From: Ophelia neglecta
Taxonomy: Eukaryota
DNA length: 64,000 bases
Assembly (NCBI GenBank): GCA_965285935.1
Contig: OZ260664.1
Location: 52,638,001 to 52,702,000 of the forward strand
Reading direction: 5' to 3'
Both the position numbers and the translations under genes were made by a program. Of the stretch, positions 15,001 through 24,000 are shown one piece after another. The notes beneath the pieces are model-generated. The model searched no databases and was not told the origin of the DNA. It worked only from the letters and a program-made list of their open reading frames with translations. The number at the start of each line of letters is the position of its first letter. The first letter of the stretch is position 1.

Positions 15001-18000
15001 CTGATGTATGCAACTGTGAATATTAAATTTCCTGTTTCGTTTTTTAATATCTGAAGTTTATCAACATCGTTTTGAGGGAATCCAACACCCAGTGAGTCGA
15101 GATTATATCTAGCTTAGAATTTACCAGCGGAAAGAGAGCAGTATTGAAGTTGAGAGCACGAAGAAAGATAACGACTCGGGGGATGTTGGTGTCGTTTTGC
15201 TTTCACAAATGAATTGTAATTATTTAGGCTTGACCATTAGAAGGACTTTGCTTCCATAAAAAGCATAAAAAAGTGTGTTAAAATTCGCTTTGATATAAAG
15301 CATGGTACTTCTTAAATAATAAAGACAAACTAGCCAGGACCATTTGTTCTACTAAAGTATGTTTTAGACTTGTCTAGGCAATGTGTATCATCAACTAGCA
15401 CTCTATGTGTGGTTCTTTTGCTCCTATGTATTATAAAGAAGTTTTTCAGGTGGCATAAAATGAATGGATGACATAGACCAATTTAAGTGTTAACAGGTGT
15501 GCCAGATATCGTAAATCTAGTTTAAGGGCATTTGTTATAAAGGAATTTCACGAGTTATTAGTATTATTGAATGAATTTTTATTTGAAAATACATAAGAAA
15601 AATATATTACAATGGCAAAGGGAGTTGGACTTTGCTAAAAATTGGCACCAATATATATATATATATATATATAAGATGCTTTACAAGAATGTGAGATTTA
15701 TTATATCTAAATATAGCAGAGCGTGGGTTAGAAACTCTCAGTTCCACTCCACTATTACTTTTTGATATGGCATTGATTAGTTCTATTGGTCCTAAGAAAT
15801 CGGTATGTATATACATATCAAAAGACAGGTAACGCGTCGTCGTCTGTAAACAAATTAAAGTTCACAGTGTTTCAGGACTAGATCTACCAAGACTAAATGC
15901 TTAGTGGTAAACGAAAATGGACAGGTGTGTATCTTTCCAACATGGTATTCCAAATTAATTAACAATTATTTGCGTTTGAGGAACGAATTAGAAAATAATT
16001 GTGTTATTAACAGACGGCGACGCGTCTGTACAGGTAAGCTGCTCGAAACAGCTTTTCTCTGAATAGCTCGTATAGCTAACCAGAAAGCGTGGCTGCCACG
16101 GGAGTGGCCCTCCAAGGAGCGGCCGGTTCAGCGGACACGGCCTCTGAAGTCATTCTCGGCTTGACCACGAAGGGTGCACTACCTAAATTAGAATAACTAA
16201 CCATGACCAGTACAGAAGCCTTGGAAAAATTCAAAGCCGATATTATAAAGGAGTTTGAGGGCCAGTTCGCAGAACTACAGCAAAAACAAAGTTCGCTAGT
16301 AAGCAGCATTACGAAAAAATTGCAACCTGACCACCCACAGCACGAATGGAAGCGACAAGGAACGAAAAAGCAATACGATTTCAACAACAGCGTTAAAGAT
16401 CATCTGACCACTGCCCAAGAATCATTGGAGAACAACGACCCTGACCAGGCCAAATCATCAATTATACAAGGTATCGTCGCTATAGAAAATAGAAACAAAC
16501 TTATTCGTATCGCCGATACTACCCCCGACGGCTGGGCCGTAGTAGACGAATATACGACGAGAGGCATCGCAGACGACTCCGACGACGACAAAAAGATACG
16601 CAAAGCCGAAAAACTCGTCAAGAAAAGGCGGGAAGAAGAGCGGGAAAAGAGGCGCCGCACCCCACAAAATCGCAGAGGCTACCAAAGACGCCAATACTCT
16701 AGTTACTGGAGACCTGCCCTGGCCGCACCTCCAATTCGTCCAAGCCTTCCATCCTACCCCACCAGCTCCTTCTCAAACATCAGACCAAACTTCACTCGAC
16801 AAACAAGCGATTCCTGCCATTTCTGCGGAAATTTTGGCCATTGGCACCGTACTTGCCCAGCAAGGCTAGCTTCCCTTTCGGCAGCCTCAGACAGCAAAGG
16901 ACAATAAAAAGCTAAGTACACAACTTAGACTATTATCATATCCTACCCCCTATCGAGATATTCTTCGTCATAGCTTATCATTCAAGATGTCTAAAATTAT
17001 CAAACCAAATATTCAAGAAAAGAAACAAATGCCTATTTCGGTCGTGGGTCGCCTAAAACAAAACCTTAATTTTTGGAAATCAATTGGGGCATCAAAGGAA
17101 ATCATCAAAATTATAGAACATGGATACGTAACTCCCTTTGTAGGCAACCCCCCTCCCATTTACCTCAAAAATAACAAGTCTAGCCGCGAAGAGCCCACAT
17201 TTGTTAATGACGCGATAGCCGATTTACTATCAACAGGAGCGGTCATAAAAACGCCAAAGCCCCCGCGCATTGTAAATCCATTGACAGTAGCTATCAATGA
17301 AAAAGGCAAAAAACGCTTGGTGCTCGATTTAAGACACGTCAACAAATATGTATACCACAAAAAATTCAAATTTGAAGATTTAAACACAGCGCTTAACTAT
17401 ATCAAACCAAATTCCTATATGTTTTGCTTTGACCTAAAATCAGGTTATCATCATATAGAATTATGTTCTACCCAAAGGGAATATTTTGGTTTTGCCTACC
17501 CTGACAAAGACGGGAATTCCCAATATTATATTTTTACTGTTCTACCCTTCGGGTTATGCTCAGCCGGACTTGTATTTTCCAAAGTCCTAAGAGAGTTAGT
17601 CAAACACTGGAGAGCATTCGGTATACAAATTGTACTCTACCTAGATGACGGTATCGGCGCCGAAGATACGCGCGAAATCGCTTGTACACACAGCGCCGTA
17701 GTGAAAGAAGATCTAGCAAAATCAGGTTTTGTAGAGAATTCAGAAAAGTCTGATTGGAATCCCACGAGAAAACTAACTTGGCTGGGATCCACAATTGATA
17801 CAGAGAGCGCAAAAATTTTTATACCAGCCGAAAAGGTCCAAAACATTCTTGAACTTCTTCAACAAGTGTTCCAAAACGACCATTTGGTAACCGCCAGATT
17901 TATTGCAAAAATCGTGGGAAAAATAACCGCGTGCTATCAAGCTCTAGGTGACACCGTTTACCTGAGAACGAAATTTCTCCAAATGCACGTAATATCAAGA

Positions 18001-21000: not shown

Positions 21001-24000
21001 CTATCGGGTTACTGAAACAATATTTCTTCAAAAATTTCAGAATGGAGAGAAAAAGAAGAGACAACATTAAAGATACCCTGTTTATCTAGAGGAAAAATCG
21101 TTTATAACAATATTTATTTTAACAGTTCATAACGCAACTCTTTGATATCTTTAATCTACATTGGGCAAAATAAAAATCCCAGGAACCTTTTAACAATCGC
21201 TTGTTAGCTGGTCACCGAGAAGTGCTTTTAAGCATACTCTACAGCAAACGTAAAACAGGGCCTGGTGCACCTCCCCGAGTTTTCCTACATAAATAAAGAT
21301 GTAGGTTTTTAAGGGGTTGGGTGGCCGCGCGATTGTACGGATATTAATTGTAATGCCCACACGCTTTGTATTTAAATTGAGTGTACAGCTACATGGTTCA
21401 AAGTAACAGCACATGCTATCGAAATATAAAATACAATAAACCTATATTTACTTCATGTATATATAGACGTAGATAAGAATAATTGTATACGGCTACAAGA
21501 AAAGATGTACACTCCCGATTAATACTTAATAAACGGCAGTCGCACCCCCGTGAAGCCACCCTTAAAGTAAGGTGTTACTTTTCATTCTATAAATCAGCAG
21601 AGCTGACAGGTAATAACCATAAGTTAAACGTGTCAGCTATTCTCTTTCTCGACACACACACGTGGCTGTCAATTTGATAGGTAGGAGTCAGCCCTCCAAG
21701 TCCAATCAATTGACTCATTTTCTCTCCTGCTTTGAAACATGAAGAGAGCAGACAATGGTTGACCTGGTCAAATGGTTCAGATAGATACACAAGGACCAGA
21801 ATCAGACTATGTCGCTGATCAAGAAAACTAAGAATGTCAATTTGTACTTTCAATATGGCCGTCTCCACATTATTGTGTTTCTCATATGCTGACAAGTGAA
21901 CAAGAGACCTCCTTCAAAGCAGTTACTAACATATATACGAAATACTAGATTAGTACTACATATATCTTCTACGAAGCTTTTGATGACCATGTCAAATTGG
22001 AGACTGGCCTATAATTATAAAGCTGTTTTTCAGGATAGGCCTGATGATAGCGATTCAAATATGGCAGGTACTGTGTGCTAATAATTACACTGAAGTACTT
22101 TTAATGAAGCCCTCCTTAAACGTTCAGGTGGATGGCGGATCAAAATTAACTGTTTTGTTTTTCCTGTGCAAACGAAACTTCCCACCTCATCTAGATTAGT
22201 TGGTGTCTGGCATTCAATTTTGCACGTGCTCGTGGAAACATATTGTCAGAACCATAGATTGGCATAAAACCAGCAGGGCACAAAGATGAAAGATCAAAAT
22301 GGTTTTGATGATCTTACCATTGAAAAATCCGCAGATCATTTCCAATGTATCCCATCGAATTATCATATCGCGGAGCTGCCTTCCATCATTATGAAGCAAA
22401 GTTTGTACAATGTGATAAAGCATCTTTTTAATCAATGAGATTTGATTTATCTTACCTTTTAGATATTCAGCCGTTGCATCATGTTACCCTTGTGCCAACT
22501 CATCTACTGTGAATGATAGGGCTTTGAAAATATCACGAAAGTTTACCTTCCGCCAGAGGTGATCAAATGTTCTTTAGCTACGTACTTGGCCTTACCAACG
22601 GCATCATTATATCATAGAAATTGGATCCTAACTTCTATCGAATTAGGCTTTAAATTTACCATCACTAGTCTTATTGGTTGCACATTTCATATCAACTTTG
22701 CACACTTATCACATTTAAGTCCCCCTGACTTTGGGTAGGTTTTAGAAACAACGTTGCAGTTATGATTAAAATTATTTTTTTCAAAATAATCAGAATTTTG
22801 GGTAGCTTTATTTTTTATCAATTAGCTCAGGCTTACAGTAAGCATCCTTAAGGTTTTTGCTTGTAATTTCTATTGCCTTAGGGCCGCTTGCTGTTGGTTT
22901 AATTGATTCTAGAACAGGAGGCAATCGAGTGCCTTGACCTGACAGGCCTGATCACCTGGATCTGATGGGCCCCTTGGGGCTCGGGGTCAAGTCTTCTGTT
23001 ATTGTATTGGCTTGCTGCCTTTACAGATACAGTTTCTGCCACTTGCGTCTGCCTGTCATAACACACTGTTTGACAGATTGACTCCCATCGTACATGGCAG
23101 GAACAAGGTGTAAAAAGAATGAACATCAACGAACAATATTTTGATAATATGCTCATAAACCCGCTAGAACCCGTATCGCGTAGCCAAAAACGTTTTGAAT
23201 ATGCAATTTTTCATATACGCACAATTGACTCTAAATCTGTTATATTTCATCTATTGTATAGTATATTATTCATCAGCATATATACAAGTTTCTATGCTTA
23301 TGAATTAGACATTGTCAATTCACTAGAATGACTCTATTTAAACCAATGTGAATTTAACTCTATGCGCATTGTGAACATTAAGAAAAGCGATAAGGGTGCG
23401 ATGAAGGGTTCGAGAAGTGTTAGGGAAAGTTTGGTTCTTGGGAAGACAAGAAGTTCCGTAGGGAGAGCAGGGGGTGGGGGGTTAAACCCTGCACACCTCC
23501 CCCTTCCCCCTAAATGGAAGATTGGATCACATCACCCCTGAACACAAAGCATTTGCTGGAATTTATACTCTCGGACGTATATCCTTCAAAAAAAAACAGT
23601 CAGAAAAAACCAGTCTGAAACCCTTAACATTGCCAACATATTAATATATGATTATATGTCTGATAATAGTTTCCTAGCGGTTTTAAACCTTTAAGTAAGA
23701 TGATGGTCATGTTGCTCCTAAAACTCCTACAGGAAATAAACGAGATCCTGCCAACGACTGACCGATTTGATCGAAAACGGTATAATTGTGTCATACCAAA
23801 CGGATGTAATGTGGAGTGCATCTTTAGGTATTTATTTGTATTTGTAGCTATTTATTCATGGTACCACCGAGGTGGCAGCGGTTCATCTCATGAGCCCTGT
23901 TGGTATTAGTATGCCTACAGCATGGTGATCCTTTGTTCAATTCATTTGCATATAATACACATGACGCATCCTTGTAAGCTGCTTCATGTAAAGGGGCTTC

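Follow-up and report, generated by a model that had tools for sequence, protein, structure and literature searches.

A heterozygous tyrosine-recombinase retrotransposon, very probably of a young PAT-like family, in a predicted metabotropic glutamate receptor intron of Ophelia neglecta

The DNA analysed here is a stretch of 64,000 nucleotides (nt) from Ophelia neglecta (GCA_965285935.1, contig OZ260664.1, positions 52,638,001–52,702,000, forward strand), referred to as the window, whose coordinates are used throughout. At 15956–21616 it contains an element in which a terminal repeat (A1), a gag-like gene, a pol gene with reverse transcriptase (RT), RNase H and methyltransferase-like (MT-like) domains, a tyrosine recombinase (YR) gene, the joined repeat copies B1A2, a 590-nt spacer and a second terminal repeat (B2) follow one another. 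In our view it is highly likely that the element belongs to a very young PAT-like family of the DIRS order with few copies and the echinoderm-form Pat1-like layout, that the present copy is intact, and that it is inserted heterozygously and in sense orientation into a metabotropic glutamate receptor intron.

All parts of the element lie on the forward strand. A1, the 5′ terminal split direct repeat (15956–16197, 242 nt), is 100% identical to its internal copy A2 (20702–20943). The 3′ terminal repeat B2 (21534–21616), which ends in GGTAATAA, likewise has a 100% identical internal copy, B1 (20622–20704, 83 nt, with a TATAAA at 20676). B1 adjoins A2, the overlap between them being a shared TAA, and this internal junction is exactly what joining the two ends of the element gives. 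The first 3 nt of A1 (TAA) are target-like, and the constant part of A in other copies begins with TTAAC (15959). A non-coding spacer of 590 nt (20944–21533) separates A2 from B2; every full copy has it, and so do the solo A-spacer-B units described below. Within 14500–23000, the region covered by the repeat search, no pair of inverted repeats of at least 30 nt was found, and a search of the element against Rfam gave no match (E up to 0.1). The element is A-rich on the forward strand relative to its surroundings.

The element has three open reading frames (ORFs), all of them uninterrupted. ORF1 (16203–16907) encodes a gag-like protein of 234 residues with a C-terminal CX2CX4HX4C zinc knuckle. 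ORF2 (16987–18996) is the pol gene, the 669 residues of which comprise the RT (residues 107–270), the RNase H (approximately 380–496) and the MT-like domain (approximately 500–650). ORF3 (19335–20378, 347 residues) encodes the tyrosine recombinase, with the R-K-HxxR-W-Y residues present; it begins 339 nt downstream of the pol stop and is co-oriented with pol. Relative to gag, pol is read one frame forward, and its open stretch begins at 16870, sharing 38 nt with the end of gag; an AATAAA signal at 21528 is located 6 nt upstream of B2, an arrangement that would be consistent with a transcript ending inside B2. No further forward-strand ORF of at least 80 residues, and none for an SGNH hydrolase, was found in the element. 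In addition, consensus-like 5′ splice donors are found in A (CAG/GTAAGC, at 16031–16040 in A1 and 20777–20786 in A2) and at the end of B1 (CAG/GTAATA, 20694–20702), sites that may fit a splicing-based expression.

The Pfam profiles RVT_1 (E = 4.5e-18) and RVT_3, the RNase H family (E = 3.4e-5), match pol, and Phage_integrase (E = 3.1e-11) matches ORF3. In an alignment of the pol protein with 45 database homologues (46 sequences), the YLDD motif of the RT (D220, D221) and residues D383, E419, D444 and D493 of the RNase H are invariant; R177, K204, H295, R298, W321 and Y330 of the recombinase are invariant in an alignment of 5 sequences. An earlier note on this DNA had claimed three open ORFs, repeat pairs without mismatch, a spacer of 590 bp and intact catalytic residues in RT, RNase H and YR, all of which is borne out by these data.

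The domain that follows the RNase H deserves a separate description. The Dam profile (PF05869) is matched by 39 of the 46 homologues, with a best E value of 1.9e-9. An AlphaFold model of ORF2 residues 495–669 (window 18469–18993), built from an 11-sequence alignment, has a mean predicted local distance difference test score of 76, and the structure that it resembles most is the methyltransferase domain of CAPAM/PCIF1 (Z 9.3, 135 aligned residues, root mean squared deviation 3.3; Foldseek E 2.9e-3, probability 1.00). The other fold matches are class I S-adenosylmethionine-dependent methyltransferases, many of them adenine-specific, including M.TaqI, T4 Dam, EcoDam, CamA, METTL5 and the KsgA/Erm rRNA enzymes. 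At the sequence level the MT-like domain gave no match in the PDB, and only the comparison of folds did. PCIF1/CAPAM, the best match, is an RNA cap m6Am methyltransferase and not a DNA Dam enzyme. At the position of the (N/D)PP(F/Y) motif IV the protein reads VPPV, with V564, P565 and P566 conserved in at least 90% over the 46 sequences. The methyltransferase domain of DIRS-type elements has been placed in the PCIF1 clade as a probably inactive enzyme (Iyer, Zhang and Aravind, PMC4738411), and the same domains are treated as Dam-like in a 2026 preprint (10.64898/2026.05.21.726589). The VPPV motif and the modelled PCIF1-like fold agree with the former proposal and sit uneasily with the Dam-centred view of the latter; the MT-like domain is probably related to PCIF1 and without catalytic activity.

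The state of the insertion site was read from one sample, for which the contigs of three DNA runs were placed on window 15800–21780. Each run has an empty-site contig in which 15955 is directly followed by 21614, so that 5,658 nt are absent, with an ambiguity of 3 nt; the longest of these contigs measures 2,068 nt. Their depths are 19, 8 and 23, and the contigs spanning the filled junctions (15899–15983 and 21590–21661) have depths of 22.7 and 18 in run X1. The empty-site contig carries single-nucleotide polymorphisms (SNPs) of its own in the flank (15860 G>A and 15893 C>G). Each flank of the insertion is found only once in the assembly, so the empty form represents the second allele rather than a paralogue. 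The insertion is heterozygous, not fixed.

Identical repeats alone give no date for an insertion, and near-identical copies of a family could mislead an assembler, so the same locus might be described as an old, fixed insertion with gene-converted repeats or as an artefact of the assembly. However, independent sets of read contigs hold both the filled junctions and the empty site, the latter in up to 2,068 nt and at similar depths, the flanks are unique and the empty haplotype has its own SNPs, and we regard either version of this explanation as extremely improbable. The heterozygous insertion may have a counterpart elsewhere in the genome: a second junction between element and flank in the reads joins the B2 end to C9:7986626–7986651, a flank that the assembly has (1 mismatch) without the junction, which makes it a candidate heterozygous insertion on an unassembled haplotype. 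A read-contig flank at C2:21044221, considered as another non-reference insertion, was rejected, as the assembly has this flank next to an A start.

At least ten full-length copies of the family, differing by 0.1–0.9%, are present in the genome; the copy list is incomplete, and the counts are lower bounds. Nine of them are uninterrupted (L001–L009), and in the tenth a nested insertion of approximately 7.9 kb interrupts A2, leaving two pieces, L010 (C5:80148849–80153693) and L016 (C5:80161626–80162443). The nine uninterrupted copies differ pairwise by 7–50 substitutions over 5.66 kb, the six closest by 7–19. All three ORFs are open in nine of the ten full-length copies, the remaining one (L008) having a stop in pol. 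The suggestion of the earlier note that the insertion is very young and the element probably active is thus strengthened by an empty allele in the same sample, by unique flanks, by sister copies 7–50 substitutions apart and by the number and integrity of the near-identical copies. The uninterrupted allele was found within the sequenced animal itself, and because this animal retains it, the family has very probably moved recently. The element is probably active.

Two further copies (L011 and L012) are truncated. In addition, there are three A-spacer-B units, 95–96% identical to window 20702–21616 (L013:1501–2447, L014 on the minus strand, and L015:1502–2460), and L011, an A-coding-B unit, terminates with B, so that both products expected of recombination between direct repeats are present. 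These solo derivatives, analogous to solo long terminal repeats (LTRs), could have originated by homologous recombination between A1 and A2 or between B1 and B2, or by the action of the recombinase at B/A junctions. The copies fall into two subfamilies that differ by an indel of approximately 28–32 nt in A, and A1 and A2 have the same indel state within every copy. This agreement fits the published model in which the A copies are regenerated from one another in each cycle (PMC6681497).

The two alleles also show the sequence around the point of insertion. The empty site reads ...CCAAAT-TAA-CCATAAG..., with a single TAA, versus a TAA at both junctions of the filled allele (15953–15958 on the left and 21609–21619 on the right), and the internal junction reads GGTAA-TAA-TTAAC. 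Over 16 insertions, the three bases to the left of TTAAC are TAA in 7, TAT in 5, AAT in 2, and TGA, TAG and TGG in 1 each, and the right end is constant in the copies (...GGTAATAA). A T at position −3 and an A at −2 are found in 14 of the 16 insertions, and C is the first base on the right in 10 of 15 (junctions of L001–L016 and L028). A 3-nt target-site duplication was rejected, given that with TAA as the duplication the left trinucleotide differs in 9 of the 16 copies; a 3-nt duplication next to an element end TAATAA was rejected as well, the right flank repeating the left trinucleotide in only 2 of 15 cases. A shared 3-nt crossover core with random resolution of the heteroduplex is unlikely, since about half of the nine non-TAA events should then vary on the right and none of them does (~2^-9). 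A symmetric core is thus disfavoured by a left trinucleotide that is variable and a right end that is constant. The simplest reading, which the junction sequences hint at, would be a preference for TA(A/T) at the left half-site, which resembles the B end, with the exchange taking place at the right edge of the trinucleotide.

These junctions can be placed in the model published for split-direct-repeat elements. Reverse transcription would act on an RNA whose 5′ end lies inside A1 and whose 3′ end lies inside B2. Its incomplete ends would be restored on the template of the internal B1A2 junction and joined into a circle. The tyrosine recombinase would then recombine the B/A junction of this circle with a target that contains TA(A/T), leaving no duplication. 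Both the formation of the circle and its integration by the recombinase are inferred from that model.

Relatives of the element were searched for with its pol protein in a collection of 5.8 billion proteins, and seven loci from other assemblies were read for their layout. The nearest pol proteins outside this genome are 40–45% identical, those with a species name being from Amphiura filiformis and Mytilus edulis. The order gag-pol-YR is found in 7 of 7 loci read in other assemblies (38–45% pol identity), and gag-like ORFs occupy the same position in relatives. Four loci (L031, L034, L035 and L036) have the layout A1..B1A2..spacer..B2 with spacers of approximately 15 to 780 nt, a range that includes the 590 nt of the present element. 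One of them, L034, has at 5348–6099 a pol gene with an internal tandem duplication of 377 nt (99.5% identical) across the RNase H/MT boundary, its ORF being open over 774 residues. The host genome itself gave at least 1,668 pol and 512 YR candidates at first look, and in 16 of 16 diverged lineages within it (38–49% pol identity) the YR is downstream of pol on the same strand. MT-bearing YR retrotransposons are thus very numerous and diverse in this genome, and every legible lineage has the PAT gene order.

The classes of such elements are told apart in the literature by the type of repeat, the MT domain, the gene order and the zinc finger of gag (PMC4157794, PMC3266345, PMC6681497). A pol with RT and RNase H, a tyrosine recombinase where other elements have a DDE integrase, a gag-like ORF and a repeat layout that is not LTR-like place the element in the DIRS order. 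The split direct repeats A1..B1A2..B2, with A1 equal to A2 and B1 equal to B2, and the MT-like domain after the RNase H are those of PAT-like elements, and the gag zinc knuckle, the co-oriented YR downstream of MT and the internal repeats downstream of the YR are those of the echinoderm-form Pat1-like type. The inverted terminal repeats (ITRs) and internal complementary region (ICR) that define DIRS1-like elements have no counterpart among the repeats of 14500–23000, and the YR is not between gag and pol. The assignment as PAT-like, already proposed in the earlier note, therefore holds for repeats, gene order, zinc knuckle and MT-like domain alike, and the definitions of Ngaro and DIRS1 fail; the support for it is structural. 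The further proposal that the family may be undescribed stands only at the level of the transposable-element family, whose nearest pol outside the genome is 45% identical, and not for the architecture, which is a published type (PMC4157794): the element is a typical representative of a class that is known but has been studied little.

A Ngaro-type element would share the A1..B1A2..B2 layout and the gag-pol-YR order, both common to that group (PMC4157794). Ngaro elements lack the MT domain, whereas here approximately 150 residues after the RNase H give a Dam match across most homologues and a PCIF1-like fold, and the SGNH hydrolase ORF is missing. The presence of the MT-like domain excludes Ngaro, an identity that we find barely credible. 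More weight is due to the proposal that the element is PAT-like by structure only, in a lineage nested among DIRS1-like elements or in an unnamed one, its split direct repeats having arisen by convergence. A PAT group has been found inside the major Dirs1 lineage by a study that stresses how homoplasious the repeats, the zinc finger and the loss of MT are (PMC4157794), and PAT-like and DIRS-like elements are scattered in RT, RNase H and YR trees (PMC6681497). Against convergence, all relatives of legible layout (16 lineages in this genome and 7 loci elsewhere) have the order gag-pol-YR, and A1..B1A2..B2 is found in all 4 relative loci with detectable repeats; we consider convergence unlikely and retain the assignment to a young PAT-like family.

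Some observations count against this overall picture. The Dam match on the pol of the element itself (E 1.4e-4, 22 bits) is under the Pfam cut-off of 28.1, and that of zf-CCHC_2 on ORF1 (E 0.005) is likewise under the cut-off, with the knuckle motif itself directly legible. The heterozygosity is read from contigs of one sample, probably the source of the assembly, and a search for RNA runs on record for the organism found none. The structural classes are not cleanly monophyletic in published trees (PMC4157794, PMC6681497). Finally, a study on DIRS-1 reports a linear single-stranded complementary DNA intermediate (PMC7192593), as opposed to a circle.

The host gene is represented in the window by collinear exons, all on the forward strand, which were searched singly. 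The exon upstream of the insertion (2280–3080) encodes the N-terminal part of a ligand-binding ANF_receptor domain (E 2.8e-36). Downstream of the insertion there are a weak ANF_receptor part (31220–31384), another ANF_receptor part (34825–35067), a further exon (37214–37420), an NCD3G exon (38691–38813) and a 7tm_3 exon (38917–39861), the best named relatives of the last being GRM1, mGluR1-like and mGluR5. The element thus lies in sense orientation within an intron of at least 28 kb. The earlier note had placed it in a glutamate receptor intron with the orientation of the host gene, and both statements are right; the ANF_receptor, NCD3G and 7tm_3 exons refine the first, identifying the predicted product as a group-I-like metabotropic glutamate receptor (a class C G-protein-coupled receptor), not an ionotropic one. 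A 5.7-kb sense insertion with several AATAAA signals in the intron of a neuronal receptor gene could affect the transcript of one allele.

To our knowledge, tyrosine-recombinase retrotransposons are the least understood order of retrotransposons, the chemistry of their integration has yet to be reconstituted, and families in which one insertion can be compared in its filled and empty alleles are few. The exact before-and-after pair of alleles described here, together with the sister insertions, can help to define the target preference and the point of crossover, and can serve as a polymorphic marker; beyond this value the results are routine transposable-element annotation. The near-identical copies number at least ten and are nearly all intact, at least one insertion is heterozygous, and a further candidate is seen in reads only; transposition of the family may be under way in natural populations of Ophelia neglecta, a possibility that we put at slightly under an even chance. 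If true, it would be a rare natural metazoan system for watching TA(A/T) target choice and integration by YR retrotransposons with split direct repeats.

Regarding the known systems, DIRS1 and DIRS1-like elements share with the present one a pol with RT, RNase H and MT-like domains, the latter in the PCIF1-related and probably inactive clade (PMC4738411), and a tyrosine recombinase. They differ in having ITRs and an ICR, and a YR located between gag and pol, often overlapping pol (PMC3266345), neither of which is seen here. Ngaro shares the A1..B1A2..B2 repeats, the gag-pol-YR order and the expectation of no target-site duplication, but is without MT and often with a hydrolase ORF, the reverse of the present element on both counts. 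The MT domain after the RNase H is what sets DIRS1 and PAT apart from Ngaro and VIPER (PMC4157794, PMC3266345, PMC6681497). The nematode-form Pat1 (PAT of Panagrellus redivivus), kangaroo of Volvox and TOC3 of Chlamydomonas have the DIRS order, the MT domain and split direct repeats in common with it. In the nematode-form Pat1 and in kangaroo, however, the internal repeats are between MT and YR, instead of after the YR; kangaroo has an inverted YR, here co-oriented; and kangaroo and TOC3 are without the gag zinc finger, here present as a knuckle (PMC4157794). Pat1-like elements are described in the literature as rare, and in the literature surveyed annelids are mentioned only with DIRS1-like elements (Capitella, PMC3266345). 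The layout of the present element is the same as that of SpPAT1 from Strongylocentrotus purpuratus, of the echinoderm-form Pat1-like type, a likeness judged by the published description, and this form is also reported from Lottia gigantea, Nematostella vectensis and Romanomermis culicivorax (PMC4157794).

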